DNA from: Basidiobolus meristosporus CBS 931.73
Taxonomy: Eukaryota; Fungi; Basidiobolomycota
Assembly (NCBI GenBank): GCA_002104905.1
Contig: MCFE01000194.1
Span: 71,951 to 135,950, forward strand
Direction: 5' to 3'
DNA length: 64,000 nucleotides
The position numbers and the translations under genes were made by a program. Numbering within the stretch: position 1 is the first letter of the stretch; each line of letters opens with the position of its first letter. Below the pieces are notes generated by a model. That model worked only from the letters and a program-made list of their open reading frames with translations, did not search any database and was not told the DNA's origin. This document shows, piece by piece, positions 28,322 through 64,000 of the stretch.

Positions 28322-28363
28322 ACTTATTCAGTGTGAGTTTGGGCATAATGATAGTGCTGGGTA

Positions 28364-42500: not shown

Positions 42501-42597
42501 AGGGGAGAGATTATGCATACGAGAAGTAAGTGGGAGAGGAGAGAGAAAAGAAAGTGGGAGTGGGAATGGGGATGGGGATGGGATGATGGAAGGGCGG

Positions 42598-43926: not shown

Positions 43927-44303
43927 TTATACCCCGTCCCGGTCAGGAGACGCGCGAGGATCAAGCGGCCTTGAGCGCCCCCTAGTTCTGTGACTAGTGG
44001 TCTGGATGCATGGACCAGATTGGATCATCCAGGAGTGCCTGTCAAATGGCCCACGCCGTGGTGTTGCATGCGAACATCCACCAAAATTCCGCCATCGCCC
44101 CTCTATGCTTCCGCACACCGATTGGGGGTAGGAGGGTGGTCGGGTGGTCTAACCAGCCGCAGCTGCAAATCCGAATGGGTTGGAACGGATGGCTTTATTG
44201 AGCGAACATAGGGAAAATATCACAGTAGATGATGATGCTCTTTCTGATTGTCACACCGTGGATTATGCTCTTTCTAATCTACTCTGCCCGGGAGGAGGGG
44301 CCC

Positions 44304-45029
44304 TCAGGACCTGAGGTAGGCCATGATGGCGGCTGGGATCGCGGCCAGCATGACTGAGGCCGAGAGTTGGTTGGACCCGCTGGGGGCCTTGATCGGGGTA
44401 GCGCTCTTGGTAGGGGCGGAGTTAACGGCGCTCGAGGGGATACTGGAAGCAGACGCTTTACTGGTGGCTGCGCTGGTGGAGGCCGAGCTGGAGGGGCTGG
44501 ATTTAGTGGACTGGGAGGAGGAAGAGGGGGTGGATGAGGTGCTCGCGGTGGAAGTCCCACTGGAGCTGGCGGGGGTTTGAGTGGAGTTGCCGCTGGGGAC
44601 CGGAGAGGCCGATGCCCCGCCGCCCCCAGCAACGTTAAAGAAGTGGCTGTACTTTACGTCGGGTCCGTTGCCTGCCCGGACGACGTAGTTCTGGCCGTTC
44701 TCCATGTTCGCCGGAACGGTCCATTCATATTTCCCATCGGCGCTGGAGACCCCGGATGCGATGACCGTCTTGACCTGAAGCGCCTCGGGAGGGCCAGACA
44801 TCAGGGCGATGTCAATCTTGGCGGGGGTGGCGGGCGGGGAGTCGTTCACCAACCTAAATACCATCAGTGACTGCGGCGCGATGGGGATGTTTCTGACGGC
44901 TACTTACCAGGTGATGGTGATCTTGTTACCGCTCTTCCACACAGTGCCATCCACGGGCTGGGTGATGGAGTAGTCGGCCACCACGGATGCGGCTAACACG
45001 AAGATGCTGGCGAGGGACTTGGTGAACAT
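44304..45029 (-). CDS. GPI-anchored Ser/Thr-rich cell-wall protein with Kre9/Knh1-like N-terminal domain, 223 aa; exons 45,029-44,908 and 44,853-44,304
   Basis: Signal peptide MFTKSLASIFVLAASVVA, ITQP..GTVW..G..ITITW motif, 54-nt GTAAGT...CTGAT...TAG intron, Ser/Thr-rich stalk, hydrophobic C-terminal GPI signal. Confidence 0.9.
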
Positions 45030-45126
45030 GCTGAGATTAGTTGGTTCTATGAGGGGATTATGGAGAATGCTGGTTGGCTTCTATGCAGGATTATTGGGTG
45101 GGTTGGCATTGGAGAGAGGGCCGAGG

Positions 45127-45134
45127 TTATATAA
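45127..45134 (-). promoter_or_regulatory. Putative TATA box of the GPI-protein gene
   Basis: TTATATAA about 100 bp upstream of the ATG in GC-rich surroundings. Confidence 0.5.
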
Positions 45135-46094
45135 GGAGGCCTGACGACTTCCGAATAATGGTGCTTTGTTCTCTACCCCCCCCCCTTTATGACGGACGCA
45201 TAGAGTGCATTGTTGCAATTGTTCGCTTCATTGTGTATCGCCCTCCGATAACCTTAAATCTCCCAGCGAGTAGTTTGGCTCAGGCAAGACTATTTGGCGA
45301 ATGTCGAGTCTTACCTAATCGCACAGGGATAGTCAGGATCACCGGGATTTCTCCTAGATCTCCATCTACATTGTTGATGCTGATGGTGTGTTTGAGGATT
45401 TGCATTATTTACCAGAGGCCGGCCAATGACGATGATAGGATTGCTCCCTTCCGTCACCGATGGTTACCGTCCCTTCCCTTGGCGATGGCGATGGCGACGG
45501 GCGCTGGAAGTGGATCTGGTACCCAGCAAGAAAGATTGGGGTGGTGCTAAGCTGGACGGGCAGTAGTCTCGGAAGAAACCTTCCGCTACTCAGACTTGTC
45601 GTTGCAGTGTTTCGGCGGTGAAACAAGCTGCATGTTACTGCATCCCAATACACCCACCTACCAAATCCATCCGAATGATCAGGGAGCGGCGAAATTTCCC
45701 TATGTACATTGGCTGGAATGGCCGTTGGAGCCTCGCACCCGCCCGTCTAGCCCTATCGTTGTCCACCCATCACCCGAGGGGTTTCATGCGAGATCGGCTG
45801 TTATTACGCAATAGAAATCCCTGCTCCCAGCTCCGCTTCCCCTCCCCCACAGCTTCCTTGACTGTCTTCTCGGTTGGGAAGTAAAGGTAGCTTTCGTGAG
45901 GTCCGGTTTCTTTTGAGAGGAAGTCTGTGAAGTCGTGGCAGGGTCACTTCCGCTTTGTGTATGAATAGGTCGGCAGCCCCCCCCCTCGAAGACCATTTCC
46001 CTGAACACTCTAACACAACAACTCTCTCCACCCACCCACCACCCGGATGAACGTGACGCAACGTAAACCTTTCCCCTTTCAACTAGTCGTCTGG

Positions 46095-46967
46095 ATGTTA
46101 ACTTACTCAAGAAGGTCGCTTAAAGCGATGCTGGCCCTCCTCCTTGCCCCCTTTACCCTGCCGATATTTAAAACCACCTTCAGTCTGCTGGAGGCCGTGC
46201 ATCGTACCTGGCTCGCGTGCGCGCTGAGCCTGGCCCACCCGCTACACTTCCTGCTCCAGTGTCTTTGGCAGTCCGCCTCGGACCCCTTGAAGGACGCCTA
46301 TCGGATTTGGGCGAGAAAAGGGTTCGAGGCGTTGCTACCCCTGGCCACATATCCGGACCAGGAACTGGATCGAATCACACCTATGCCGCGGAGGGTGACC
46401 CCACCCAGGCGGTCCACATTTAGACGAGATACCAGCCAGCTCAGGGTGCAGCTGGTGCGGAACATGGAGGCAAAATGTTGGGGGATTGACCCGGTTGGGT
46501 TGGATGATTCTCTTGCGCACCGTCACTAACCCACGCTTTCTCCGTCTAGGGAGACGCAAGACGCTGTCCCAGTGGGCGAAAGAGGCATCCCTCTTGTTGG
46601 CGCACCCACCCAGTAGGCGTCGTTCCTGATGTCGCGGCCTGCCCTATTCGGCACTGTACTAACCATTGACCCACCTCTAGTGGACAGGAATATCCCACGC
46701 CGGTCGGCCGCCCCGCCCACTAGACTCGCCAAGCGAGAGGGACTACGGGCCATGAAGGAGACCAAGCGGGAGCTTCAGTGTCCCCCGCTGACTCTCCCAC
46801 CAAGACTCCACCCACCGTGGATGTACATGCGCAGCCCGGCCCCCAGCACGCCCCGACACTCCTTCAGCACCACGTTGAGAAGCGGGAGCTCACTAACCAA
46901 ATATCCACTCCGCCCGCCCAACGCGCCACCCACCTTCCCCACCCTGGTCTATTTAACACCATCCTAA
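46095..46967 (+). CDS. Hypothetical protein, ~243 aa; predicted exons 46,095-46,476, 46,550-46,612, 46,681-46,967
   Basis: Two CTAAC branch points with pyrimidine tract and TAG acceptors (46,549; 46,680); donors GTTGGG (weak) and GTAGGC; 73- and 68-nt introns keep the frame and join ORFs 46047-46529 and 46629-46967. Start codon uncertain. Confidence 0.5.
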
Positions 46968-47228
46968 ACGATGTTCGTCCCCCGAAGCCTCCTCCCCACA
47001 TTCTGTATATTACGTTGGCTTTAATAATTATTCGATTGTACATCTTGGCCGAGATGGAAGCATGTGCGCGTGCTGTCTATTACATATACTACGGGTAGAA
47101 CAAAAAGCGGGTGCGAGAAGGGGAGTGGAGGGTTGGGCGGGTAGACAATGGGGGAGGTATGGTGTATGGGATGATTCAAAATTCGGCCGATGACGACGGT
47201 TGCATCTGCTCGGGGGTCGTCCGCCCCC

Positions 47229-48799
47229 TCACTCCTCCATGGGCTCCGCCGAGAGCTGCTCGTAAGGAGCGGGGCGGATGGAGAAGGCGGTGGCCTGGCC
47301 GCTGAGGTCCCGCTGGGCGGGGTTCCCGCCGGTGGCGCCGTTGCTCACCCCGAACACCTTCAGCTTCTCGGCCCAATTCTCCGCACGGTCGACGCTGTCC
47401 TTGAAGATCCCCGCGATGCTGTTGAGCATCAGGAGACTCTCGGTGGCAAAGACCAGCACCCGCTGCGCGGATCCAGGGAGGTTGTTGCGCGGGCCATCGG
47501 AGGCGGGGGACATCAATGGGGAGCCCATCGGCGAAGGCGATGCGCTGTGTACTGTGGCCTGAATAAAGTCCCTCGGTTAATGAACTGCATCCTGTTGGGT
47601 TAGATCACTCGCATGGAGCCTTACCAAACGTCCGGGCAGCGTCAGGATAAACTCCCTGACATGCTTTCGGGCCTCTCCCGGTAGACACGATCCCGCGTAT
47701 CTTCCCACCACATCCACCACCTTGCGCACCGTCTCGATCAGCTCGCGCTTGATGCTCGCCAGCGTGCTGGGGTTGTGCACGGTCAGCGCGGTGGATTCCG
47801 AGGAGTTCCCGTTAAGGCCGGCGATGTATTCCTTGAGCAACGAGATTTGCTGATCGATGTTCCCGGTGGCATATTGCAGCCACTGCAGACAGTACTTCAG
47901 CGCCCTCATACTCTCCTCGCTGAACGCGGCCGCTCCCGCCCCCGCCGCCGCGGACGCCTCCACAAGGTATTGCTCCCACCGGCTCCGCTGGACGCTGGCA
48001 GTGCTCACCTGGGTTAGGCTTTGTGATTGGCTGGGTGGGTCCGATGTGATGTCTGGTTCCAAGAGGTTACTCTTCTCGCCCACAACAATAGTTTACCCAT
48101 GGCCGGTGGCTTACCTGTTTCCTTCGCCGAAGAGACGTTCCTCTGGCGCAAACCAGAGGTTTCGTGTGCCATCACCTCCTCCCCATCTTGCCTCTTCAGG
48201 GAGGGGTATCTCTTCTCCAGGGAATCCAGTTGTCGACAGGCAAACTCGTCCAGCTGGCCGAGCTGTGGCTCGAGTTTGTTCAGCACTGGCATCCCTATGG
48301 TTTTCACCGCGGACTCTACTCTTTCCGCCCCATACTGTCCAGGAGAAAGGAGCGAAGGTCAGTTTGACAGCTAGTAACAGGCGTCTGGTTAACCCCCCCC
48401 CTCCACATACCTTGACGATTTTGCTGTTTGTCTTGCTCTGTTCGTAGAAACGAAGGGCCGAGTTGACCAAGGGGATGTTGGACACTCGGGAGATGAAGGG
48501 TTGATTCAAGGTCTCCAGCTCCCCATCTACGTTGAAAAAACCGGTGAGAATCCTAGGTCGCGGAGCAGACTCCTCGAAGTCGACTTACCTTGGGCACCAT
48601 CGCCCAACGCCCTCATGGTGCCTAAGGCCTGCACGGCCTCCATCTCTTGCGACATGCGCTCAATGTCGGAGTCTTTCATATTGGAGACATCGCATAGCTG
48701 CTCGATAGACATAGGGGAGGGCAAGTCGTATTCAGGCCCGGTCTGGGCAAGCGAGTGGATCTCGCTGATTGGGGGTAGCGTCTGAGTATCGTTAGACAT
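47229..48799 (-). CDS. OPI1: Opi1/CCG-8-family transcription factor, 434 aa; exons 48,799-48,589, 48,526-48,411, 48,334-48,115, 48,052-47,625, 47,558-47,229
   Basis: Family motifs FISRVSNIPLVNSAL..Y..SK..S.IVKYGAE.VES, LDEFACRQLD, SEESMRALKYCLQWLQYA, IKRELIETVRKVVDVV..YAG..LP, A.RVL..ATESL.ML; four 62-76 nt GT-AG introns give an open frame. Confidence 0.9.
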
Positions 48800-49240: not shown

Positions 49241-49582
49241 AATATCGCCCGCCCATCAGCCAATCATCAATTGACTCTTGGGCATTTCCTGTTGCTTCTT
49301 GCCGTTGATTACTATCACATGGAAGCCACCTTAATCCTCGTGTTCTCGATTCCTAGGTGCCAAAACCATGGCGTTTTATTGCCCGCGTTTCGACCAAATG
49401 GGAGAAATATCCATTGGCTGGAGTGGATCTAGCACCAGGACACAACGTTTGTCGCAGATATGGGAATTCAGGGTTTAGAGTTTGTTACAGTGACAAGCCC
49501 ACTGGTTTGTATTCGGTGATTCAATATGGATTGGGATTTGGTGCGGATTTGGTGAGATTCGGTGCGACCATTCCTTTTTCAC

Positions 49583-50155
49583 ATGAATCCTTCCTTCTAC
49601 CTGCTCTCGCTGTGGTGGTGGGCGCTACTGTGCTACTGCCAGCTGATAGTCCCTTCCTTTTCCCCACCGTTGCCTAGCAATCATTGCCAGCTGGGCTTGG
49701 AATTGGCCGTGGAAACGCTCCTGGACTCTGACTGCCTCCCGTTACGAAAGCTCAACCCCGTGTTTACCCGCTTGGCAAAAGACCCTGAGAGTGTGAACGC
49801 CACAGTGGTCTCTGCCTTTGATCTGGTTTGCCGCTTGCCTTCTTGCTCTGCTGACTCCTTGAGACGCTTCAAGGATACCATATACACCCGATGCCATTCC
49901 GATCTCGCGAATCCATTGATCGCCTCCTATCTTTGGGTTGCGGAGAACTTTCAGCCGCTGACGGAATGGGGCTGTGCCAACGGAGAGGGATGCTTGGTCA
50001 GGCTCCTTCTCACCTGGCTACTGAACGAGCGAAGTGTGCTACTCAACGACTCCAATCCCAAGCTTTGCAAGAGATGTCGATCCACTTGGCTCGATATGGA
50101 GAAACGGTATCCGACTTTGAAAGCCACCTTTGTCAGCGAACTTCTGCAATGCTGA
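49583..50155 (+). CDS. Secreted cysteine-rich hypothetical protein, 190 aa
   Basis: Signal-peptide-like N-terminus (MNPSFYLLSLWWWALLCYCQ), regularly spaced Cys in the mature part, intact ORF in the CpG-rich island. Confidence 0.72.
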   Translation: MNPSFYLLSLWWWALLCYCQLIVPSFSPPLPSNHCQLGLELAVETLLDSDCLPLRKLNPVFTRLAKDPESVNATVVSAFDLVCRLPSCSADSLRRFKDTIYTRCHSDLANPLIASYLWVAENFQPLTEWGCANGEGCLVRLLLTWLLNERSVLLNDSNPKLCKRCRSTWLDMEKRYPTLKATFVSELLQC

Positions 50156-51168
50156 GGTTGGTTGGGAATGGTACCGATGTTTGCTGGTAGTTGTATCATT
50201 GCGCATTGCATTGCATGAAACTATCATAAACCGGAGATAACCAGAATCCGCTTAATTTGCTCAAGTAATCGATTTAATTCATCATCTCGCCTATTGTGTG
50301 CTCAAAGATAAATCTACTCTTTTTGACCACCTCATTGGTAGTCAAGATGCAATTTCAATCCTCGATTATGCATAACAAATGAACCGCAATATGCCGATCT
50401 ACATAGGATATCATTCCGATCTATCAGGGTGAAGCATATGAGCCAACCTGCCCTGTTTCATCATTGATTGCAAATGGTTATATGCCTGCTGCACATGCCC
50501 TCGATTATACATTCTTTAGTTCAGTAACTTTGATGCTCCGCTTTACCTCTTTGCGAGATATATCCTTCAGGGTTTTCCCCATCTGGCTGTGAGCATTGCG
50601 CATGCCTGAAGAAAATATACTCCAGGGCTGTTTAGCTACTACAAAGCCTAGGTCAAAAAAGGATAAGAGGAGCAGGAATCTGTCTAGGAACATATATATT
50701 GCTGCACAATATGAAGTGATATTTTTCAAAGCTTGTTTTGTACAAAGATGGGTGCACACATGCTCTTGGGACCTTCCTAAACATATTCTATGTGCTTATT
50801 TTGCCAAGACCATGTTGAAGTATAAATGCCACTTTTACATACAATAAATGATAAGTGAAAACCACATAATCTATTTGTTCTCCCAATCACTTCTAATATT
50901 GCCAAAACTCTTACAGCATGTTATGAGCCCTGAGCAGTCACTCTCTAGAATATCTACTACTGCAATTACTGCAGTCTCCCCCTCTGCTGAGCAATAGGAC
51001 AGATCAAACTGCTATGGCTGGAAGGTGAAGGTGAAGATGCTACTGCAGGAAGGAAGCTTTTGGGGTCTTGATTTGGGAGAAGAATGCCATCTTAAAGGTG
51101 TAGGGGAAGAAGTGAGAAAGTATTAGAAGAATGAACAAAGTGCCTTAATGTTAAAGACAAGTTGCTAG

Positions 51169-51516
51169 TGTTGCAATATTCTGAGGAGTATTGGAAGTGA
51201 TGTGGAGCACTAGAGGATTTACATGTTATTCAACTGTAGGTATATTGATCAAAAGTATGGTGTTTATACTTTTGCTAAAGTAGAGCAAACAAACATATAG
51301 AGTTTGCTAAGGAAAATCCCAAGAATATGTGTGCAAAGTCTGGGGGCTTTTGGACAACTTTGAGAAAGATCATAATCTGGGTACCTGATAATTTGGGGAA
51401 AATATTTTAAGTAAATCCCAACAAGAAATTTGGTCTGGACAGAATGCTAATCAAAGAATAAGATCTATGTGCCTAAGTTAACATGAATATCTAGGTGACA
51501 ACTTAATAATACAACA
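51169..51516 (-). repeat. Family-B solo LTR inserted antisense in gag; near-TSD GCTAG/GCTAA
   Basis: TGTTGCAA...ATACAACA; removal restores AAGTTGCTAATTCAATG as in the full-length element. Confidence 0.8.
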
Positions 51517-51876
51517 GCTAATTCAATGCTCAGCAGCAAAAACAGCAACAAATGCCTGCAAGACACTAGAAGACACCTGCCAGCCATGCTCTGCTGCTAC
51601 AAGCATGAATCTTAGACAGAAACTCTTTACAACAAATAATCACACAGGAGAAGAAATAAAAAATCTAATCAACTGAATACCCTGCTGGTTGATCAGATGC
51701 AGTGAGTGCATGCACTAACCACTGATGAGGATGTGATGGTGCCATCCTGAATAGCCTTACAGAAAAGCTGCAAGGTCTTGTAACAGTCCTAGAGTCAAGA
51801 GCCAAAGATTTGACTCTGTGTTATGGATGTCTCCTTGATGAGGAAAGAAGAAAATCAAATGTTAATATGAAGGAAG

Positions 51877-52225
51877 TGTTGTAAGAGTCTTGAAGATATT
51901 GTAAGTGATAGGGAGAACAAGTAGATTATGTTGTTTTCAATTAATGAATTATTGAATGTAAAAGTAGCATATATACTTTCACATGGTCTTGGCATAACAA
52001 ACATGTAGAATAGGTATAGGAAAGTCCCAAGAACATGTGTGCAAAGCTTTGGGCTGTTTGGACTACCTTAAGAATTTTCATGTTCTGGGTACCTGATATT
52101 TTGGTCAAAATATTCTAAGTAAATCCCAACCAGGAAATTGGTCAGTATACTCTAGGATTTGAAGGTAACAATCTATATGACTAAGTTAGGTGGATATTCA
52201 GGTGGAATTGTAGATTATTACAACA
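51877..52225 (-). repeat. Family-B solo LTR inserted antisense in gag
   Basis: TGTTGTAA...TTACAACA, close match to 33,427-33,773; flanks GGAAG/CAAAG do not form a clean TSD. Confidence 0.88.
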
Positions 52226-54180
52226 CAAAGAAGTAACTACTTTAATAAGCCTTGATAACCACTAAAGGAGGCACTGAAGACCCTTTAATGGTAACAGCAA
52301 CCTGACTTGCAGCTACCTAAAATAGAAACAACAGACACCTGACCATTGTATAAAAAAGAGAGATAATCAGCAGAAAAACCTGATTATCGAAATGCTGCAA
52401 CCACTGATGATGGACTATTCATATCTGCACCAACAATGGCCACAAGCAAGGATTCTCAGAAGTGGTATAACAACTGTGGAGCAGCTCAACACCTTACACA
52501 CCAATAAGAGCTCTTTACCAAATATCAAGAGATTCTACTCAAGAAGGTCTCATGAGATGCATCAAAATACTTGATGCAGCTGAACAGACAAATATCCAAG
52601 TCAGTACTTGATGTAGTGAAGGAAGCCACAAACCTACCTGTAAAGCAGTACGCTATATACCAGAAATAGCCAGGAACTTAACATTTGTAATCAAGGCCAT
52701 GGCAGAAGGTCTCAGAATCAGTTTTGACAATTCTAGATGCAAAATCACTGATCAAGTTGGCTCTCATATTACTTTGGGCAGCAGTGACCAGAATCCATAT
52801 AAGATGACATGTATTCCACCATATCTGGAAGCCAATAAACATATGTAAATGAAGAAACTCCAATGCTTTGGTACAGGAGATTTGTACACATCAAATTTGA
52901 TTATTTGGGCAAAGTGATCAAAGATCAGCTAATCTCCTGTGTAAAAATGGATCCCCCAGATAACACAAAACACTGTAAAGCCTACTCTGGGCTGATCAAT
53001 ACCAAGAAAAGCTTAGAACTAACCCACCGTGATCAGGGTTGAGTATTCAATGTTTATCCACAGGCACAATCAAGTATTTGATCACATTTATGGCAATTAC
53101 AAAAGATACAGGTGGGTCTACTTCATTGAAACAAAGGACAAGTCTATGTCTAAGCTTAGTCATTTCAAGGCCCTGGAAAGAGAGAAACTGGTGAGAGAAT
53201 CAAGAAAAATGCTCTGACAATGATGGAGTAGATACCTCAAAACTCTTCACCCACTTATGGAAAATTCATGGGATAAAGCAAGAGACTGCTGCATTATGCT
53301 CCCCACAGCAAAATGGAGTGTCAGAATGTGTAACAATATAGATCAAGTGCAGAGCACCCAAGAATACATGGATACATAGCAAATGCCAAGAAACTGCCTA
53401 GAAATCTGTCATAGTGCAAGCCAAAGAGTAAAGAGTACATATTCTTGGGCTACTACAATGAGAGTAAGACAGCAGACTGCACAGCACCAAAGCAAAGAAG
53501 CTGATCAAGTCCAGGGATGTGCTGTTTGATGAAAATTCAAACTCTCACAAAATTCAACCAATTTTGAACTCTGAAAACTGACTGTCTTTATTTAAAGTAA
53601 GTGTTTACTTTTTATAGTTATTAGTTTGAAACACTATCTTGTGGGTTTGCGTAGGATTGTAGTATGATTTCCAATCACTTGTATCTTGGACACTAGTTGA
53701 GCTCTGTCTTTGAAACTCTGTAACACTAAGGTTTAGTCACTTGGCTATATATGGCGTAAATGTCATGTTGCAGGTCCTAGTGGTTTTTTAGTAAATGAAG
53801 TGTTTGTTAATAGTTTAGTTATGTCACAAGTAGTGACAGTTTGCTTCTGAAACTTGGTACATATCTTTGAGATTGGTGATGCTGCATTGCTGCCAAGTTT
53901 CTGAACTGTACATTTATGGGTTCTTCTTCACATGGGCTGTTTCTACAGTAGTATATTTTTATCTTGTAACATACCTTCCCACCTAATGGGTTTCTTCTCC
54001 TGAAGAAGCTTGTTGGACTTCATATCCACCAGAATTGCTTGTTAGTTTGCTCCTCTAGTGTCATTCTTGCCCTAGTGAGGTGGCTTCTGCATACCAGGGT
54101 TAGTCTGACTTTATCCATCCATTTAGCTTCCAAAGCACAAGCTCACTTCTTTTAAGCACATACATATCAAAGCCCTGAAG

Positions 54181-54957
54181 ATGCGTCTTAGTCTCACCAC
54201 AATTGTCTCTCTTTGCCTCCTTGTTGGATTAGGCGCAGAGGCAGCGCCACATTGTTCCAAGGGGGAGTATCAATGCTCTGGTAATAGCTTCCTACAGTGC
54301 GATAATGGCAGATGGGTTACTAAGCAATGCGGACCTGGAACTCGCTGTGTGCAAAAGAGCCAAACAAGCGTGTACTGTGACTATGACCACGTAGCAGCAG
54401 CAAGCATAGAGCGTCGGGCACCTAGTGAGTGTAAACCAGGAGCTTATAAGTGCACAGGAAAAGGCTTCCTTCAATGTGCCAATGGTTCTTGGGTACGCAA
54501 AGAGTGTGGACGTGGAACAAAATGTGTCCAAAACGGACCAAACGCTGTCTATTGTGACTACAGTGCTAAGGTTGAACGACGTGCACCACATGAATGCAAG
54601 CCTGGAGCCTATAAGTGCAGTGGACAAGGATTCCTTCAATGCGATAACGGTAAATGGGTCCACAAGAGATGCGGGGCTGGTACAAGCTGCGTACAGAATG
54701 GACCAAATGCCGTATACTGTGACTATGCCAAAAAGGGCTCACACCATGGTTTGGAAGCAAAGACTCTTTTAAGCTCTAGCCATGGCTCCGGCTCTGGCTC
54801 ACGTGGTGAATGCCGTCCAGGAACCTACCAATGCGCTGGCCAAGGCTTCCGTCAATGCGACAATGGAAAGTGGGTCCATAAAGATTGTGGACCTGGCACT
54901 GCATGTGTACAAAACGGAGACTATGCTGTTTATTGCGACTATGCCAAGCTTGCTTAA
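54181..54957 (+). CDS. Secreted protein with four 6-Cys CBM19-like chitin-binding modules and Kex2-type spacers, 258 aa (copy 1)
   Basis: Signal peptide, then four C..G.Y.C.G.GF.QC.NG.WV...CG.GT.CVQ......YCDY modules resembling the yeast Cts1 CBM19; ERR-AP linkers. Confidence 0.88.
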   Translation: MRLSLTTIVSLCLLVGLGAEAAPHCSKGEYQCSGNSFLQCDNGRWVTKQCGPGTRCVQKSQTSVYCDYDHVAAASIERRAPSECKPGAYKCTGKGFLQCANGSWVRKECGRGTKCVQNGPNAVYCDYSAKVERRAPHECKPGAYKCSGQGFLQCDNGKWVHKRCGAGTSCVQNGPNAVYCDYAKKGSHHGLEAKTLLSSSHGSGSGSRGECRPGTYQCAGQGFRQCDNGKWVHKDCGPGTACVQNGDYAVYCDYAKLA

Positions 54958-55381
54958 ACCCTTTCTCAATCCAAACACTTGATTTTTGCCCTAGGTAGTA
55001 TCCGCTACAATCATTTGCATACTTTTCATCGGAAATCTGAGATTACAGATAGCTTAGCCAAGCTATGTTGTAGACAAGGATTATAGATCACTCATTCATT
55101 CCAACCAGTTCTTGGTATTCCTTACTCCACGTTCGTATGTACATTCATCAGCATACTTGAAGTCATACTTCTTCCCATGTTTATGGTGATAATGATTACT
55201 ATTATTACACTATTGTTTCTCGTGTATATATATATATATATATACACGTTGTCCTCCTTCCTGGCCGGGACATTGGTAAAATGAAAATAAATATGTTTCT
55301 ATTGAACTCTCAATTGATATAGCTTCTGCTGTTGGTTTGCTCAAGAATAGTGTACAAACGCAAAAATGAATTCAAGGTGAA

Positions 55382-55452
55382 TGCGTTAACTGGGAGTCGA
55401 ACCCAGGCCAACTGCTTGGAAGGCAGTTATTCTACCGCTATACTATTAACGC
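55382..55452 (-). tRNA. tRNA-Gly-TCC: tRNA-Gly(TCC)
   Basis: Cloverleaf; ACTGC-CTTCCAA-GCAGT anticodon arm; GGTTCGACTCC B box. Confidence 0.95.
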
Positions 55453-55601
55453 TTGATGGCTATTTATGGCCTCCTATTAGACAGGAAAACTCCTGAATTT
55501 TACAGCTGAAATTACGGTAGGAATTAAGCAACAAGTTTCATTGAGAAATTACCAAAGGCGCTTGATCAGGTTTGGAGTTAGTGTAGGTAAGTAACATCGA
55601 G

Positions 55602-55683
55602 GACACTTTGGCGGAGTGGTTAACGCGGTGCCCTGCTAAGGCATTTCCCTATGGGAGCGCAGGTTCGAATCCTGCAGGTGTCG
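55602..55683 (+). tRNA. tRNA-Ser-GCT: tRNA-Ser(GCT)
   Basis: Long variable arm; GTGCC-CTGCTAA-GGCAT; T-tract follows. Confidence 0.95.
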
Positions 55684-55878
55684 TCTCTTTTTTATTTTTC
55701 TCGATTAGCTTGGCATACTTGCATGATCAACGTTTGAAAGCATTCAGGACCTAATGCAAACCCACCATAAGCCAAGATATTTTTCTTCTTCTGATATTGT
55801 AAGCTCTATCCTTGTCGCCTTTGGTTAAGTCTTACGCCACCAAGAAATAGAAAGTAAGCGCTATAGCTTTTGAGAAAG

Positions 55879-55952
55879 TCCTACTAGTCTAGTGGGTAAG
55901 ATATTGTGACAGGAATAGAGCTCAAGTCCCTGGTTCAGTTCTCCGGTAGTAA
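55879..55952 (+). pseudogene. tRNA-like pseudogene (D-arm and T-arm remnants, no anticodon stem)
   Basis: AGTCTAGTGGGTAAGAT (A-box-like), CCTGGTTCAGTTC (B-box-like), 6/7 acceptor pairing. Confidence 0.4.
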
Positions 55953-56266
55953 GTGATTATTTGACTACCAAAAGGGCAGCCTTACGAGGTTATGCAGAGA
56001 TATTTTATGATAAAGATCAAGGCTATTGGGTGACATGAAACTAAAAATAACTCTTTAACTAACCCTAAGTACCTACAACAAATTTGGACATTTTTATGCA
56101 AGATGCTGAGCTTGTCCGATTTGCTAGAGTGATCCTACCTTGGAGCCAACATGAGAGAATCAGTCAGCTACAAAATAAACTGGAAAGGGTGGGACAGATA
56201 TCCAGCTGAGTCAATGATTGTACCCGTGCAAAAACAAACCATTGCAAGAACTAGGCTAAAAGAGAA

Positions 56267-56340
56267 TGCTCACAGCAGGGGTCGAACCTGCGACCTTGGC
56301 GTTATTAGCACCACGCTCTAACCAACTGAGCTATGCGAGC
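56267..56340 (-). tRNA. tRNA-Ile-AAT: tRNA-Ile(AAT), downstream cistron of a Ser-Ile pair
   Basis: TGGTG-CTAATAA-CGCCA; T-tract after the 3' end. Confidence 0.95.
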
Positions 56341-56345
56341 ATATA

Positions 56346-56427
56346 CGACGACAGCAGGATTTGAACCTGCGCGGGCAGAGCCCATATGATTTCTAGTCAT
56401 ACGCCTTAACCACTCGGCCATATCGTC
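56346..56427 (-). tRNA. tRNA-Ser-AGA: tRNA-Ser(AGA), upstream cistron of a Ser-Ile pair
   Basis: TATGA-CTAGAAA-TCATA; long variable arm; 5 nt from tRNA-Ile. Confidence 0.95.
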
Positions 56428-56620
56428 AAGTACACGCTTCTCGAGCAAAAATCAACACAACCGGTCAGATGATAGCTTTGAGCAGGAAAGGACCGGGGAC
56501 CGAGAATATTAACAGGTGTAAAGGTGATCTGACCAGAATAGTGCACTGTTTTATTGCTGAAATGTTGTACTCATTATCAGCATGGCTCTCAAAATAGATC
56601 GATAAACCGTGTAAAAGACA

Positions 56621-56692
56621 AGGTCTCGCCGAGAATCGAACTCGGATTACAGGATTCAAAGTCCTGGGTGCTAACCATTACACCACGAAACC
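56621..56692 (-). tRNA. tRNA-Gln-TTG: tRNA-Gln(TTG)
   Basis: CAGGA-CTTTGAA-TCCTG. Confidence 0.95.
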
Positions 56693-56839
56693 AACTCGAC
56701 TAGGACGCATTTGGATTGGTACTCTCAAGCGCATGAGCACATGGTTCTCTGGTCTTTAACAGAGAAGCCAATGTCACCATTTGCCCGCATAGAGTCAAAA
56801 CATCAAAGACAGCCATGCTCTGGCATATTCAATAAAAAT

Positions 56840-56922
56840 TGGTAACAGTGAGATTCGAACTCACGCCTCTTACGAGACCGCAACTTGAGTGCGGCGCCTT
56901 AGACCAACTCGGCCATGTTACC
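56840..56922 (-). tRNA. tRNA-Leu-CAA: tRNA-Leu(CAA), intronless
   Basis: CCGCA-CTCAAGT-TGCGG; long variable arm. Confidence 0.95.
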
Positions 56923-57238
56923 AGCTTGTACACAAACAGGCAATGTCATAACACTAAGCGATAGCTGATAACATATCCGCATAGCTTAAGGGGAGGGGGG
57001 GGGGGGAAGAAAGGATACCTTCGCTACTCATGCGGCATCTGTTCTCTCAAGCACAATATTATCCAAGACGTATTTGCACCCTGATTGCCACATTTCTTCA
57101 GACAGATCTTCCAAATATAATCTACGGATTTGTATACTATGTGAAAGGCAAAATACAATTATAATGCTAGGACCTCCTTAGGTAAATCTATATATACATT
57201 TTCCAAAAATGTATGCTCTTTAACTAGGGCTTCATCAA

Positions 57239-57311
57239 GGGGGTCTAGCTCAGATGGTAGAGCGCTCGCTTAGCATGCGAGAGGCACTGGGATCGATACC
57301 CAGGTCCTCCA
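57239..57311 (+). tRNA. tRNA-Ala-AGC: tRNA-Ala(AGC)
   Basis: CTCGC-TTAGCAT-GCGAG; G3:U70 identity pair. Confidence 0.95.
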
Positions 57312-57490
57312 TGGAACTTTCTCTATTTTGCAGTAGATACATTTTGCTGGTTAACTCGTTTACGCAGCGGTTTATTCAATTTTCATCATGGGTTCTCTTA
57401 GATTTCGGTACAATCAAGGTTCAAAAATTTCTATCTAAATAGTCGAAAAATTTCTGTAGAGCAAAACATTCAGATGTCAAAAATAAAGGT

Positions 57491-57563
57491 CACCCAACGT
57501 GGGGGTCGAACCCACAACCTTGAGATTAAGAGTCTCACGCTCTACCGATTGAGCTAGCCGGGC
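57491..57563 (-). tRNA. tRNA-Lys-CTT: tRNA-Lys(CTT)
   Basis: TGAGA-CTCTTAA-TCTCA. Confidence 0.95.
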
Positions 57564-58071
57564 TAAGTGCATTCGAGTCCCCTCTAAAGTATCTTTTGTT
57601 GCTTTCGAGATTGGTGACTTTCAAATCCGAAAGTCAAAGTAGCCGGCATTCAATTAGTTGACTCAGTATCTCTTGAAGCATGTGTGAGGGTACAAAGCAA
57701 AATGACTTCAAATGTATGCTTTTATACTTTCCTCAATATTTGACACATGCGCTGAGTTATCATATTCAAGGCTAGTAACTGTACAGGGGATGAATTAGTT
57801 GTGATTCCATATAATACGTTGCAATGGTGCATTTGATGGATGCTCACCACATCCAGGCTCAAGTTGCAAGCACGTAAGGAAGGCAAGCAGCCTTGCGTAT
57901 AATTTGCTTAGGCAATGTGGATAACGCCAAAAGAAAATGGCATCTCCGCATATTTAAGTATGCACTGGGCAAGCCTCTAATTGCACCATTTCTAACAACA
58001 CACCAAAGGGGAAAGAATCAAAGCAAAAGTTTAATGAATAGAATTTTCTTTTCTCAACTACAAAGTAAGTA

Positions 58072-58145
58072 GCTCTTGTGGCGCAATTGGCTAGCGCGTC
58101 TGACTGTTAATCAGGAGGTTGGTGGTTCAAGCCCACCCAGGAGCG
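58072..58145 (+). tRNA. tRNA-Asn-GTT: tRNA-Asn(GTT)
   Basis: TCTGA-CTGTTAA-TCAGG; T-tract follows. Confidence 0.95.
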
Positions 58146-58336
58146 ACTATTTTTATGATTATCTACACTGCCATGTTTGCACATACAAAGCATATATGGT
58201 GGCGTTCTCTTTTGAAATAGAGCTGATAAAAGTACAACCATCCCGGAAGGCCTATTAAGTATGACCAACAATGAATGTATAGGACACAGGCAAGAATTTA
58301 TCTTTATCACGGAGCAGGAAGCTTTTTTCAAAAAAG

Positions 58337-58420
58337 TCCGAACACCCGGATTTGAACCAGGGACCTAAAGATTGCTATAAACACTACAGTCTTCCGCTCT
58401 ACCAACTGAGCTATGTTCGG
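58337..58420 (-). tRNA. tRNA-Tyr-GTA: tRNA-Tyr(GTA) with 11-nt intron
   Basis: GAAGA-CTGTAG-[TGTTTATAGCA]-ATCTTT; intron at the canonical 37/38 position. Confidence 0.94.
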
Positions 58421-58822
58421 TACATTGACATGTCTCCGGACAATATGATCATAATTATATAATTATCCACATTACAAAGGTCCAAGCTCTCACTCACAAA
58501 GCTGGCGTCTGCTTTGAGTGATACATTTACCACTCACTGGAACCTTCAATACCTAGAAGCATTGTTTCTGAAGGGATGCTTGCATGACAAATCACCTTTT
58601 GTCCGCTTCTATATTGTAGTGGGGGTGAATACCTCTTGGTAAAACAGTGTCAATAGCCTTTCTATTGCTGGTGAGATATACTGCTGGCATGGTTAGATAA
58701 GCTAAGAAGACTGCCATTAATTAGTCTGCTTATTGATGTGTCCCTCCTATCCTATCTACTATAAATCGAGGCTATCGAGATCCAATTTCTGACCAAAAGA
58801 CTACCATCAACAGTGTCAAAAA

Positions 58823-58893
58823 TGCATACTCGGGGAATCGAACCCCGGTCTACCGCGTGGCAGGCGGTAATTATACCACTAAACCAAGTATGC
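58823..58893 (-). tRNA. tRNA-Gly-GCC: tRNA-Gly(GCC)
   Basis: ACCGC-CTGCCAC-GCGGT. Confidence 0.95.
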
Positions 58894-59223
58894 TACGTTG
58901 ACAACTTATCCCAAAATGAGCATCTCAATTATTAACAATCACCATCACTATCAAGGGGTTAGGGGTTCTGTGAAAGTCCAGATTCAAGCCTCATGATTAC
59001 AAGGCAAATATCCTCCTATCTTGCTATGCTACTGCTGAGCTGTCCAAGCATTTAACGGAATTCACAAGATGCATAACCTTGCTAGCATGCTTCCTTTCAA
59101 GAGCCTATGCTGCATCTCACTATTAGGTGGAAAAGGCAAGTCATACAACCTAGCGTTGTGCTACAAATATAATCCCTCATAACTTTATTTACGAGATGCT
59201 GTTTTGGTAATGGCAAAAAGTTA

Positions 59224-59295
59224 TAGCAGCGAGAGGTTTCGATCCTCCGACCTCGGGGTTATGAGCCCCGCGCGCTTCCTCTGCGCTACGCTGCT
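59224..59295 (-). tRNA. tRNA-iMet-CAT: Initiator tRNA-Met(CAT)
   Basis: A1:U72 pair, GATCGAAA T-loop (A54), G:C-rich anticodon stem GGGG-CTCATAA-CCCC. Confidence 0.95.
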
Positions 59296-59964
59296 TATGA
59301 TATACACAAAGCTCACAAATTACACAACTATGGATTGCCTACCCACTGGGTAGAAGCTATCATCAAGCCACCAATCCCGCAGAAATTCATAGGCCATGCC
59401 CATCAGAATAAATACACCGGTGCAAAATTATAAAAATAACATTACTCCGCTTTGGCTTAGCTCTTCTCTAAATGGGCTGAAATTTATAAAATCGATTTGC
59501 CCAATAGCACCCAGTAAGATTCGATCTTCCCAGGATTATAACAAATCAAAACTATGGTGATCTTGATGGATTCACCGTACTGTACTGCGTTTCATATTGA
59601 TCTGGGTAGATTTACCATGAACAAGTAATGAAAGTAATTTACTTCTGGTTGGGCAGATATCCCAAGAAAGAGTGTAGGCTTGGGCTACCTATATTTGTAT
59701 CAGGATGGCTAAACTAGTGCGGCAAATGGCACCCAAGCCTTCAATGTTTCCCAAAAGGGTAGGCATGTAAAGTTCAACCTTCGTCATTGCTCGCAAGCTG
59801 CCATCATTTGACGAACATCCCATTATTAGTTAATAGTCCATCTTGCCAAAAATTACGATAAAAAGTGGGTGTATTTGCACGTACATTTGTTGAAGTAGTG
59901 ATGTTTTCCATGATTTAGATGTATAGCTGATCGATTACACATTGAACCTCGGAAATCTGACATC

Positions 59965-59971
59965 TATAAAA
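59965..59971 (+). promoter_or_regulatory. Putative TATA box (TATAAAA) of CBM19-like gene copy 2
   Basis: About 110 bp upstream of ATG 60,079; no equivalent upstream of copy 1. Confidence 0.55.
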
Positions 59972-60078
59972 CTGCAAGTTGGGACCACAGCTACAACTAT
60001 CAATCAACAGATCCATCCATTTAGCTTCCAAAGCACAAGCTCACTTCTTTTAAGCACATACATATCAAAGCCCTGAAG

Positions 60079-60855
60079 ATGCGTCTTAGTCTCACCACAA
60101 TTGTCTCTCTTTGCCTCCTTGTTGGATTAGGCGCAGAGGCAGCGCCACATTGTTCCAAGGGGGAGTATCAATGCTCTGGTAATAGCTTCCTACAGTGCGA
60201 TAATGGCAGATGGGTTACTAAGCAATGCGGACCTGGAACTCGCTGTGTGCAAAAGAGCCAAACAAGCGTGTACTGTGACTATGACCACGTAGCAGCAGCA
60301 AGCATAGAGCGTCGGGCACCTAGTGAGTGTAAACCAGGAGCTTATAAGTGCACAGGAAAAGGCTTCCTTCAATGTGCCAATGGTTCTTGGGTACGCAAAG
60401 AGTGTGGACGTGGAACAAAATGTGTCCAAAACGGACCAAACGCTGTCTATTGTGACTACAGTGCTAAGGTTGAACGACGTGCACCACATGAATGCAAGCC
60501 TGGAGCCTATAAGTGCAGTGGACAAGGATTCCTTCAATGCGATAACGGTAAATGGGTCCACAAGAGATGCGGGGCTGGTACAAGCTGCGTACAGAATGGA
60601 CCAAATGCCGTATACTGTGACTATGCCAAAAAGGGCTCACACCATGGTTTGGAAGCAAAGACTCTTTTAAGCTCTAGCCATGGCTCCGGCTCTGGCTCAC
60701 GTGGTGAATGCCGTCCAGGAACCTACCAATGCGCTGGCCAAGGCTTCCGTCAATGCGACAATGGAAAGTGGGTCCATAAAGATTGTGGACCTGGCACTGC
60801 ATGTGTACAAAACGGAGACTATGCTGTTTATTGCGACTATGCCAAGCTTGCTTAA
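60079..60855 (+). CDS. Secreted four-module CBM19-like protein (copy 2)
   Basis: Identical translation to 54,181-54,957. Confidence 0.88.
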   Translation: MRLSLTTIVSLCLLVGLGAEAAPHCSKGEYQCSGNSFLQCDNGRWVTKQCGPGTRCVQKSQTSVYCDYDHVAAASIERRAPSECKPGAYKCTGKGFLQCANGSWVRKECGRGTKCVQNGPNAVYCDYSAKVERRAPHECKPGAYKCSGQGFLQCDNGKWVHKRCGAGTSCVQNGPNAVYCDYAKKGSHHGLEAKTLLSSSHGSGSGSRGECRPGTYQCAGQGFRQCDNGKWVHKDCGPGTACVQNGDYAVYCDYAKLA

Positions 60856-61279
60856 ACCCTTTCTCAATCCAAACACTTGATTTTTGCCCTAGGTAGTATC
60901 CGCTACAATCATTTGCATACTTTTCATCGGAAATCTGAGATTACAGATAGCTTAGCCAAGCTATGTTGTAGACAAGGATTATAGATCACTCATTCATTCC
61001 AACCAGTTCTTGGTATTCCTTACTCCACGTTCGTATGTACATTCATCAGCATACTTGAAGTCATACTTCTTCCCATGTTTATGGTGATAATGATTACTAT
61101 TATTACACTATTGTTTCTCGTGTGTATATATATATATATATACACGTTGTCCTCCTTCCTGGCCGGGACATTGGTAAAATGAAAATAAATATGTTTCTAT
61201 TGAACTCTCAATTGATATAGCTTCTGCTGTTGGTTTGCTCAAGAATAGTGTACAAACGCAAAAATGAATTCAAGGTGAA

Positions 61280-61350
61280 TGCGTTAACTGGGAGTCGAAC
61301 CCAGGCCAACTGCTTGGAAGGCAGTTATTCTACCGCTATACTATTAACGC
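61280..61350 (-). tRNA. tRNA-Gly-TCC: tRNA-Gly(TCC), unit 2
   Basis: Identical to 55,382-55,452. Confidence 0.95.
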
Positions 61351-61499
61351 TTGATGGCTATTTATGGCCTCCTATTAGACAGGAAAACTCCTGAATTTTA
61401 CAGCTGAAATTACGGTAGGAATTAAGCAACAAGTTTCATTGAGAAATTACCAAAGGCGCTTGATCAGGTTTGGAGTTAGTGTAGGTAAGTAACATCGAG

Positions 61500-61581
61500 G
61501 ACACTTTGGCGGAGTGGTTAACGCGGTGCCCTGCTAAGGCATTTCCCTATGGGAGCGCAGGTTCGAATCCTGCAGGTGTCG
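61500..61581 (+). tRNA. tRNA-Ser-GCT: tRNA-Ser(GCT), unit 2
   Basis: Identical to 55,602-55,683. Confidence 0.95.
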
Positions 61582-61776
61582 TCTCTTTTTTATTTTTCTC
61601 GATTAGCTTGGCATACTTGCATGATCAACGTTTGAAAGCATTCAGGACCTAATGCAAACCCACCATAAGCCAAGATATTTTTCTTCTTCTGATATTGTAA
61701 GCTCTATCCTTGTCGCCTTTGGTTAAGTCTTACGCCACCAAGAAATAGAAAGTAAGCGCTATAGCTTTTGAGAAAG

Positions 61777-61850
61777 TCCTACTAGTCTAGTGGGTAAGAT
61801 ATTGTGACAGGAATAGAGCTCAAGTCCCTGGTTCAGTTCTCCGGTAGTAA
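61777..61850 (+). pseudogene. tRNA-like pseudogene, unit 2
   Basis: Identical to 55,879-55,952. Confidence 0.4.
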
Positions 61851-62164
61851 GTGATTATTTGACTACCAAAAGGGCAGCCTTACGAGGTTATGCAGAGATA
61901 TTTTATGATAAAGATCAAGGCTATTGGGTGACATGAAACTAAAAATAACTCTTTAACTAACCCTAAGTACCTACAACAAATTTGGACATTTTTATGCAAG
62001 ATGCTGAGCTTGTCCGATTTGCTAGAGTGATCCTACCTTGGAGCCAACATGAGAGAATCAGTCAGCTACAAAATAAACTGGAAAGGGTGGGACAGATATC
62101 CAGCTGAGTCAATGATTGTACCCGTGCAAAAACAAACCATTGCAAGAACTAGGCTAAAAGAGAA

Positions 62165-62238
62165 TGCTCACAGCAGGGGTCGAACCTGCGACCTTGGCGT
62201 TATTAGCACCACGCTCTAACCAACTGAGCTATGCGAGC
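62165..62238 (-). tRNA. tRNA-Ile-AAT: tRNA-Ile(AAT), unit 2
   Basis: Identical to 56,267-56,340. Confidence 0.95.
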
Positions 62239-62243
62239 ATATA

Positions 62244-62325
62244 CGACGACAGCAGGATTTGAACCTGCGCGGGCAGAGCCCATATGATTTCTAGTCATAC
62301 GCCTTAACCACTCGGCCATATCGTC
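62244..62325 (-). tRNA. tRNA-Ser-AGA: tRNA-Ser(AGA), unit 2
   Basis: Identical to 56,346-56,427. Confidence 0.95.
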
Positions 62326-62518
62326 AAGTACACGCTTCTCGAGCAAAAATCAACACAACCGGTCAGATGATAGCTTTGAGCAGGAAAGGACCGGGGACCG
62401 AGAATATTAACAGGTGTAAAGGTGATCTGACCAGAATAGTGCACTGTTTTATTGCTGAAATGTTGTACTCATTATCAGCATGGCTCTCAAAATAGATCGA
62501 TAAACCGTGTAAAAGACA

Positions 62519-62590
62519 AGGTCTCGCCGAGAATCGAACTCGGATTACAGGATTCAAAGTCCTGGGTGCTAACCATTACACCACGAAACC
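62519..62590 (-). tRNA. tRNA-Gln-TTG: tRNA-Gln(TTG), unit 2
   Basis: Identical to 56,621-56,692. Confidence 0.95.
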
Positions 62591-62737
62591 AACTCGACTA
62601 GGACGCATTTGGATTGGTACTCTCAAGCGCATGAGCACATGGTTCTCTGGTCTTTAACAGAGAAGCCAATGTCACCATTTGCCCGCATAGAGTCAAAACA
62701 TCAAAGACAGCCATGCTCTGGCATATTCAATAAAAAT

Positions 62738-62820
62738 TGGTAACAGTGAGATTCGAACTCACGCCTCTTACGAGACCGCAACTTGAGTGCGGCGCCTTAG
62801 ACCAACTCGGCCATGTTACC
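62738..62820 (-). tRNA. tRNA-Leu-CAA: tRNA-Leu(CAA), unit 2
   Basis: Identical to 56,840-56,922. Confidence 0.95.
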
Positions 62821-63135
62821 AGCTTGTACACAAACAGGCAATGTCATAACACTAAGCGATAGCTGATAACATATCCGCATAGCTTAAGGGGAGGGGGGGG
62901 GGGAAGAAAGGATACCTTCGCTACTCATGCGGCATCTGTTCTCTCAAGCACAATATTATCCAAGACGTATTTGCACCCTGATTGCCACATTTCTTCAGAC
63001 AGATCTTCCAAATATAATCTACGGATTTGTATACTATGTGAAAGGCAAAATACAATTATAATGCTAGGACCTCCTTAGGTAAATCTATATATACATTTTC
63101 CAAAAATGTATGCTCTTTAACTAGGGCTTCATCAA

Positions 63136-63208
63136 GGGGGTCTAGCTCAGATGGTAGAGCGCTCGCTTAGCATGCGAGAGGCACTGGGATCGATACCCAG
63201 GTCCTCCA
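63136..63208 (+). tRNA. tRNA-Ala-AGC: tRNA-Ala(AGC), unit 2
   Basis: Identical to 57,239-57,311. Confidence 0.95.
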
Positions 63209-63387
63209 TGGAACTTTCTCTATTTTGCAGTAGATACATTTTGCTGGTTAACTCGTTTACGCAGCGGTTTATTCAATTTTCATCATGGGTTCTCTTAGAT
63301 TTCGGTACAATCAAGGTTCAAAAATTTCTATCTAAATAGTCGAAAAATTTCTGTAGAGCAAAACATTCAGATGTCAAAAATAAAGGT

Positions 63388-63460
63388 CACCCAACGTGGG
63401 GGTCGAACCCACAACCTTGAGATTAAGAGTCTCACGCTCTACCGATTGAGCTAGCCGGGC
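63388..63460 (-). tRNA. tRNA-Lys-CTT: tRNA-Lys(CTT), unit 2
   Basis: Identical to 57,491-57,563. Confidence 0.95.
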
Positions 63461-63968
63461 TAAGTGCATTCGAGTCCCCTCTAAAGTATCTTTTGTTGCT
63501 TTCGAGATTGGTGACTTTCAAATCCGAAAGTCAAAGTAGCCGGCATTCAATTAGTTGACTCAGTATCTCTTGAAGCATGTGTGAGGGTACAAAGCAAAAT
63601 GACTTCAAATGTATGCTTTTATACTTTCCTCAATATTTGACACATGCGCTGAGTTATCATATTCAAGGCTAGTAACTGTACAGGGGATGAATTAGTTGTG
63701 ATTCCATATAATACGTTGCAATGGTGCATTTGATGGATGCTCACCACATCCAGGCTCAAGTTGCAAGCACGTAAGGAAGGCAAGCAGCCTTGCGTATAAT
63801 TTGCTTAGGCAATGTGGATAACGCCAAAAGAAAATGGCATCTCCGCATATTTAAGTATGCACTGGGCAAGCCTCTAATTGCACCATTTCTAACAACACAC
63901 CAAAGGGGAAAGAATCAAAGCAAAAGTTTAATGAATAGAATTTTCTTTTCTCAACTACAAAGTAAGTA

Positions 63969-64000
63969 GCTCTTGTGGCGCAATTGGCTAGCGCGTCTGA
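63969..64000 (+). tRNA. tRNA-Asn-GTT: tRNA-Asn(GTT), unit 2, 5' part only (window edge)
   Basis: Identical to the first 32 nt of 58,072-58,145. Confidence 0.9.

Follow-up and report, generated by a model that had tools for sequence, protein, structure and literature searches.

Tandem arrays of transfer RNA (tRNA) genes have long been seen as a curiosity of amoebae and frogs, the frog case being the 3.18-kb tRNA repeat of Xenopus. They also occur in a fungus, as the telomere-to-telomere assembly of Schizosaccharomyces japonicus contains 34 copies of a 5.6-kb unit with 18 tRNA genes and three 5S genes, together with 46 copies of a 6.4-kb unit (PMC7619369). Tandem units in this species hold 15-18 tRNA genes, some with 5S genes, and one telomeric array of 575 kb keeps a fixed order of 15 genes; the array regions contain essentially no protein gene and were collapsed in older assemblies (PMC7619369). 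In Entamoeba, tandem units of one to five tRNA genes are explained by concerted evolution (PMC2652664), and the arrays have been placed at one end of every chromosome (bioRxiv 10.64898/2026.07.06.736064). The human tRNA tandem repeat at 1q23.3 ranges from 9 to 43 copies per allele (PMC4041453). Here we describe a related arrangement in the fungus Basidiobolus meristosporus CBS 931.73, in which a 5,898-bp unit that combines 12 different tRNA genes with a gene for a predicted secreted protein of chitin-binding type is repeated head to tail at the end of a contig.

The stretch analysed (the window) is the terminal 64 kb of PacBio contig MCFE01000194.1 from assembly GCA_002104905.1, with window coordinates equal to record coordinates minus 71,950, such that window position 64000 is the contig end at record position 135,950. 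Self-comparison of the window identified a direct repeat between 54113-58103 and 60011-64000 that is 99.95% identical over 3,991 aligned columns, with a period of 5,898 bp. The copies follow each other head to tail at a constant period, meet at a unit junction at 60010/60011, and amount to 1.68 assembled units. Two differences separate them, an A/G substitution at 55226, next to a (TA)10 run, and a difference in the length of a G-run (12 versus 11 letters at 56995/62893). An earlier sequence-only reading of this DNA had proposed near-identical head-to-tail copies of a 5,898-bp unit, with 12 intact tRNA genes of 12 anticodons joined to a gene for a secreted CBM19-type protein. The repeat comparison bears out the first part of this proposal, agreement between ARAGORN and Rfam bears out the tRNA content, and Pfam matches above the cut-offs of both CBM_19 and CBM_14 bear out the nature of the protein gene.

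ARAGORN and Rfam agreed on 12 tRNA genes within 55382-59295, the first eight of which recur within 61280-63460, and found no tRNA genes elsewhere in the window. Rfam scores were 53-66 bits, compared to a gathering score of 29, and the 12 anticodons are all distinct (TCC, GCT, AAT, AGA, TTG, CAA, AGC, CTT, GTT, GTA, GCC and CAT). The CAT gene has A1, three G-C pairs in the anticodon stem and an AUCGAAA T-loop, which we take to be hallmarks of an initiator, making this gene the initiator tRNA-Met (iMet). A run of T4-T6 lies no more than 16 nt downstream of 11 of the 12 genes, the exception being tRNA-Ser(AGA). This gene ends 3 bp before tRNA-Ile(AAT) on the minus strand, and the gap holds no T-run (56266-56428; 62164-62326); because of this close spacing and the missing terminator the two are probably a co-transcribed, dicistronic pair, resembling the dicistronic tRNA gene pairs known from fission and budding yeast. 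A permissive Rfam scan to E = 0.1 over one unit length (56340-62170) detected no other RNA gene, whether 5S, small nuclear RNA (snRNA) or pseudo-tRNA. Tandem-repeat scans found no Entamoeba-like microsatellites between the tRNA genes beyond the (TA)10 run and an 8-bp doublet.

The sequence-only reading knew of no described fungal equivalent, which is incorrect given the tandem tRNA arrays of S. japonicus, one of them at a telomere (PMC7619369). Both fungi carry many different tRNA genes per unit of a few kb (5.6-6.4 kb in S. japonicus), head to tail and, for one of the S. japonicus arrays, likewise in a terminal location. The S. japonicus arrays differ in being mostly centromeric and in having units without a protein gene, Basidiobolus belongs to a distant fungal phylum, and the S. 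japonicus copy numbers (34 and 46) were measured, whereas the B. meristosporus locus is known from 1.68 assembled units. Entamoeba units are small, some with 5S or snRNA genes, their genes are separated by microsatellites, and a canonical telomere repeat is lacking; the B. meristosporus unit instead combines 12 tRNA genes with a protein gene and is nearly free of short tandem repeats, in a genome with ordinary TTAGGG telomeres. The human 1q23.3 and Xenopus repeats are likewise multi-tRNA units of a few kb with variable copy number, but they come from animals, lack a protein gene in the unit and occupy non-terminal positions. No publication on tandem tRNA genes in Basidiobolus turned up in a literature search.

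A second contig of the same assembly, MCFE01001221.1 (12,880 bp), provided the context for this locus. Because it shares both the flank and the unit with the window and then terminates in (TTAGGG)33, the assembled sequence indicates that the tRNA block lies at a chromosome end. Unit sequence gives way to telomere repeat after the equivalent of 57559, at a point four bases inside tRNA-Lys(CTT), and the join has no obvious microhomology to the TTAGGG repeat. MCFE01001221.1 holds 0.84 of a unit and no duplication, and the window contig extends 544 bp beyond the equivalent of the join point in its second unit. No interstitial telomere repeats were found in the window, and telomere repeat is absent from the window's own portion of its contig. 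The two contigs thus differ in both the length of the block and its inner edge.

Comparison of the two contigs showed that the unit is more conserved than its surroundings. The unit has three differences in 4,960 bp, and at 55226 MCFE01001221.1 carries the allele of copy 2. Flank identity is 97.9-98.8%, with 0-5 differences per 500 bp outside a divergence hot spot, where window 50468-51968 and MCFE01001221.1 1000-2500 show 72 differences in 1.5 kb. The two contigs are probably haplotypes, and MCFE01001221.1 would then represent the same chromosome end in the alternative haplotype, or else a healed broken copy. The join of telomere to tRNA-Lys could mark a chromosome break that was healed within this tRNA gene or an end specific to one haplotype, and the terminal join on this contig may also be a chimera. 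A comparable structure is reported for Magnaporthe oryzae, where telomere repeat directly abuts a unit of the ribosomal DNA (rDNA) array (PMC1635262). Both cases place a telomere directly on a unit of a tandem RNA-gene array; the M. oryzae array is rDNA, whereas the B. meristosporus join lies inside a tRNA gene and on one of two contigs.

The position at which the repeat begins on MCFE01000194.1 proved to be informative about the first copy. Self-comparison of the window found no match to the unit tail left of 54113, which makes this position the inner edge of the repeat on that contig. The junction 60010/60011 is uninterrupted sequence on MCFE01001221.1, and the corresponding order is also found in relatives (below), so the unit "start" at 54113 is a rearrangement breakpoint and not the origin of the repeat. 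As a consequence of this breakpoint, copy 1 of the protein gene lost its native upstream spacer: it keeps 68 bp of native upstream sequence without a TATAAAA box, whereas copy 2 has the box, and copy 1 is therefore probably promoterless. We also considered whether the unit is a mobile element and rejected this, as no terminal repeats or transposase were seen in it and the junction order is native in MCFE01001221.1 and in relatives. Coordinates of all features are collected in Table 1.

Table 1. Features of the tRNA repeat locus and of the second contig (positions are window coordinates unless MCFE01001221.1 is named)
Feature	Position	Strand	Remarks
Repeat unit copy 1, 5,898 bp	54113-60010		left edge is the junction with the flank rich in transposable elements
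Repeat unit copy 2	60011-64000		cut at 68% by the end of MCFE01000194.1
CBM19/peritrophin-type gene copy 1	54181-54957	+	signal peptide and four 6-Cys modules
CBM19/peritrophin-type gene copy 2	60079-60855	+	full upstream spacer, TATAAAA at 59965
tRNA-Gly(TCC)	55382-55452; copy 2 61280-61350	-	ARAGORN, Rfam
tRNA-Ser(GCT)	55602-55683; copy 2 61500-61581	+	ARAGORN, Rfam
tRNA-Ile(AAT), second of Ser-Ile pair	56266-56341; copy 2 62164-62239	-	ARAGORN, Rfam
tRNA-Ser(AGA), first of Ser-Ile pair	56345-56428; copy 2 62243-62326	-	ARAGORN, Rfam
tRNA-Gln(TTG)	56621-56692; copy 2 62519-62590	-	ARAGORN, Rfam
tRNA-Leu(CAA)	56839-56923; copy 2 62737-62821	-	ARAGORN, Rfam
tRNA-Ala(AGC)	57239-57310; copy 2 63136-63207	+	ARAGORN, Rfam
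tRNA-Lys(CTT)	57491-57563; copy 2 63388-63460	-	ARAGORN, Rfam
tRNA-Asn(GTT)	58072-58145	+	ARAGORN, Rfam
tRNA-Tyr(GTA), 11-nt intron	58336-58420	-	Rfam; gene left unnamed by ARAGORN
tRNA-Gly(GCC)	58823-58893	-	ARAGORN, Rfam
Initiator tRNA-Met(CAT)	59224-59295	-	divergent from the CBM19-type gene, 783 bp apart
Gene-free AT-rich flank	50156-54112		between the last ordinary gene (49583-50155) and the repeat; common to MCFE01001221.1
Flank on second contig	MCFE01001221.1 1-4320		equals window 49468-53771, 97.9% identity
Solo long terminal repeat, 1,325-bp insert	MCFE01001221.1 4321-5650		TG...CA, flanked by 5-bp duplication GTTGC; absent from window contig
Flank remainder, 346 bp	MCFE01001221.1, after the solo long terminal repeat		matches window up to 54112
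Ty3/gypsy fragment, 1,726 bp	MCFE01001221.1 5997-7722	-	RNase H and integrase parts of the element; absent from window contig
Unit sequence, 4,960 bp	MCFE01001221.1		equals window 58497-63456, 99.94% identity
(TTAGGG)33 telomere repeat	MCFE01001221.1 12614-12880		orientation of a true right chromosome end

The protein gene sits in the widest gap between tRNA genes of the unit, and its two open reading frames encode identical proteins of 258 amino acids. Each consists of a hydrophobic leader and four modules with the cysteine pattern C-x6-C-x7-C-x9-C-x5-C-x9-C, and Pfam matched four stretches each of CBM_19 (46.1 bits, cut-off 20.1) and CBM_14 (28.9 bits, cut-off 22.1). The AlphaFold model consists of four small five-strand modules, with a predicted local distance difference test (pLDDT) score of 70-80, and disordered linkers between them. 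Foldseek returned Peritrophin-48, cbd-1, CPG-2 and obstructor-E as the closest fold matches among reviewed proteins and the Aplysia protein EHEP as the best among solved structures, with E-values of 1e-6 to 1e-4 and low template modelling (TM) scores, which are expected because the protein is a flexible multi-module chain. Taken together, the domain matches and the predicted fold support a secreted protein of chitin-binding type. Peritrophin-48, obstructor-E and cbd-1 likewise carry several small 6-Cys beta modules in a row behind a signal peptide, but in contrast to those proteins the four-module, 250-amino-acid architecture seen in B. meristosporus is limited to Basidiobolus-like sequences, and its chitin binding is predicted.

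In a profile search of 1.8 billion representatives, one 50% cluster contained all occurrences of the four-module architecture, and about 170 other clusters held relatives at module level. A sequence search of the Protein Data Bank with the 258-amino-acid protein gave chance-level matches only, and a Joint Genome Institute (JGI) metagenome scan found no relatives of it. The exact protein is on two contigs only, both from GCA_002104905.1, and its 90% cluster has one member. Two of the module linkers read ERR-AP and are invariant across all four lineages, a pattern that fits processing by Kex2 and a dipeptidyl peptidase, and the third linker is rich in His, Ser and Gly and varies in length.

Close relatives of the protein gene gave an indication of how long it has been linked to tRNA genes. 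They comprise only three proteins of 251 amino acids, 80% identical to the B. meristosporus protein, on 2.2-kb Logan contigs from three different runs. The first 30 nt of each of these contigs match the 5' part of the iMet gene and the last 30 nt match the 3' part of the tRNA-Gly(TCC) gene, on the same strands and in the same orientation as in the window. The sequence-only reading had pointed to tRNA order in related genomes, with or without the CBM19-type gene, as a check, and iMet and tRNA-Gly(TCC) flank the orthologue in all three gut-metagenome contigs. Logan contigs are built from 31-letter words and stop where a word has several continuations, and because these contigs end within the two tRNA genes, the iMet and tRNA-Gly(TCC) genes would be multi-copy in the genomes of the relatives. 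One of the runs is listed among the metagenome and transcriptome data sets of a paper on the frog Rana kukunoris (PMC12259888), an origin that fits Basidiobolus as an amphibian gut fungus (PMC7466969).

When the Logan contigs were compared to the window, the coding region alone aligned (77%) and the spacers were unalignable. By the Nei-Gojobori method, synonymous divergence (dS) between the B. meristosporus gene and its relatives is about 1.3, with a ratio of nonsynonymous to synonymous divergence (dN/dS) of 0.07-0.09, and two of the relatives differ from each other with a dS of 0.53 and a dN/dS of 0.08, values that indicate strong purifying selection on the CBM19-type gene. As the orthologues in the three relatives lie between the same two tRNA genes in the same orientation, the segment from iMet through the CBM19-type gene to tRNA-Gly(TCC) predates the split of at least three lineages. 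The protein gene had earlier been called a passenger, a label that is misleading for a gene kept between iMet and tRNA-Gly(TCC) since before the sampled lineages split; it is better seen, on this comparison, as an old resident of the tRNA cluster and not a recent arrival.

We favour, with moderate confidence, the explanation that the locus is a real head-to-tail repeat of an old tRNA cluster at a chromosome end, present in more than two copies and kept uniform, with the protein gene co-amplified as a resident. The unit content, the head-to-tail order, the near-identity of the copies and the terminal position are all as in the arrays of S. japonicus and Entamoeba, and we assign the locus to the same kind on these grounds. 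MCFE01000194.1 stops inside the repeat without reaching a telomere or unique sequence, from which we infer that the true copy number exceeds two. A weak hint in the same direction came from two runs of the same sample, of which only about 1 million contig letters were kept and which contain 71-78% of the sampled words of the unit; by a Poisson estimate this would place the unit at least 16-fold over the genome average if both runs are random shotgun. Runs of other organisms hold 5-9% of the unit words, and because this matches the share of words lying wholly inside tRNA genes (9.5%), those organisms share the tRNA genes and not the unit.

The pattern of divergence also fits homogenisation, since the units of the two contigs are more alike than the flanks and the spacers cannot be aligned with those of relatives whose coding region is 77% identical, whereas copies within the genome differ by about 0.05%. 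The suggestion of an rDNA-like, concertedly evolving locus therefore stands as far as near-identity within the genome is concerned (about 0.05% compared to roughly 0.2-1% in the flank outside the hot spot), while the long, rDNA-like array is putative. Several observations weigh against our explanation. The sequence itself shows two copies at most, with 1.68 assembled at the window locus and less than one unit on MCFE01001221.1, and the assembly holds no array-only contig with the CBM19-type gene. The hint from run size rests on assumptions about the nature of both runs, and with only two or three copies seen, homogenisation is indistinguishable from a very recent two-copy duplication.

Such a duplication is a possible, though not a probable, explanation of the locus in its own right. 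In this case a subtelomeric tRNA cluster was duplicated once in tandem, by a single unequal sister-chromatid exchange or by break-induced replication, to give exactly two copies without ongoing array dynamics. The 1.68 assembled units with one substitution between copies would be consistent with this event, as would the presence of less than one unit before the telomere on MCFE01001221.1 and the absence of further contigs carrying the CBM19-type gene. It is harder to reconcile with a PacBio contig that halts mid-repeat with neither telomere nor unique sequence, as assemblers do in repeats longer than the reads, and with two tiny runs of the same sample that still hold most of the unit words.

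A different driver for the amplification could be the selective advantage of an increased dose of the secreted chitin-binding protein, which might shield the fungal wall from gut chitinases or bind insect chitin, with the tRNA genes carried along. Modules of the CBM14/CBM19 type are also used by fungal wall-shielding effectors, and the modules encoded here are of this peritrophin/CBM14-CBM19 type. The intact gene has evolved under strong purifying selection, and its duplicate in copy 2 includes the promoter, yet copy 1 does not have the native upstream region, and we regard this explanation as improbable. The related suggestion of an amplified effector locus that carries tRNA dosage with it found nothing in its favour beyond the presence of the gene.

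Finally, an assembly artefact that entered a single-copy cluster twice would account for the position of the repeat at the very end of the contig and for the one difference that is a homopolymer length, a typical PacBio consensus error, but it is very improbable, as the junction 60010/60011 is continuous on the second contig, the order from iMet to the CBM19-type gene across the junction recurs in three relatives, the wrap-around order Lys-Asn-Tyr-Gly-iMet-CBM19 needs real reads, the true substitution at 55226 separates the copies and has its copy-2 allele on MCFE01001221.1, and direct tandem duplication is, to our knowledge, not a usual artefact of long reads.

If the locus is a terminal tRNA array with more than two copies, the observations could be connected as follows. 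The whole block of 12 tRNA genes and the CBM19-type gene would have been multiplied by unequal exchange between units, and the units would stay more alike than their flanks through exchange or gene conversion, both among units and from one contig's copies to the other's. Breaks within the array would be capped by telomerase, and insertion of a Ty3/gypsy element followed by later deletions may have shaped the inner edge. The CBM19-type gene would have been amplified along with the tRNA genes as a resident and not as the driver.

Elsewhere in the window, gene-rich and repeat-rich DNA differ sharply in composition. A block of 56-60% G+C at 42000-48000, amid about 38% G+C, holds ordinary genes, among them a Kre9/KNH-domain protein, an Opi1-perilipin protein and others. 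The AT-rich part has several 85-92% repeats at 26218-37918 and 1926-6362 that belong to transposable element families, among them a 736-bp perfect-register foldback at 29283-30018, with related copies at 37522-37918.

Tandem tRNA arrays are thus already known from a fission yeast and amoebae, and what is unusual here is a long-conserved RNA polymerase II (Pol II) gene inside the unit and a telomere joined onto a tRNA gene. The occurrence of such arrays in two very distant fungal lineages suggests either repeated origins of the arrangement or an age greater than previously assumed. Contigs that end in tRNA units are probably collapsed in this assembly, and tRNA genes would therefore be undercounted in the genome. 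The B. meristosporus locus also indicates that a Pol II gene can persist stably within the unit through near-saturated synonymous divergence (dS about 1.3) while being multiplied with it. In budding yeast, tRNA genes can insulate their neighbours or silence Pol II promoters close by, which makes this locus a natural test case for a Pol II gene that lives beside them.

The join of telomere and tRNA gene bears on whether these arrays act as expendable buffers at chromosome ends. A more sweeping possibility, which we consider unlikely on the present observations, is that tRNA arrays are a regular building block of Basidiobolus chromosome ends, with breaks healed by TTAGGG addition onto tRNA genes, array lengths that differ between haplotypes, and a fast-changing dose of the resident Pol II genes. 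Entamoeba would likewise have tRNA arrays as chromosome-end blocks, and Basidiobolus would differ from it by having an ordinary telomerase. If this were the case, the copy number and the dose of Pol II genes resident in the arrays could change quickly.

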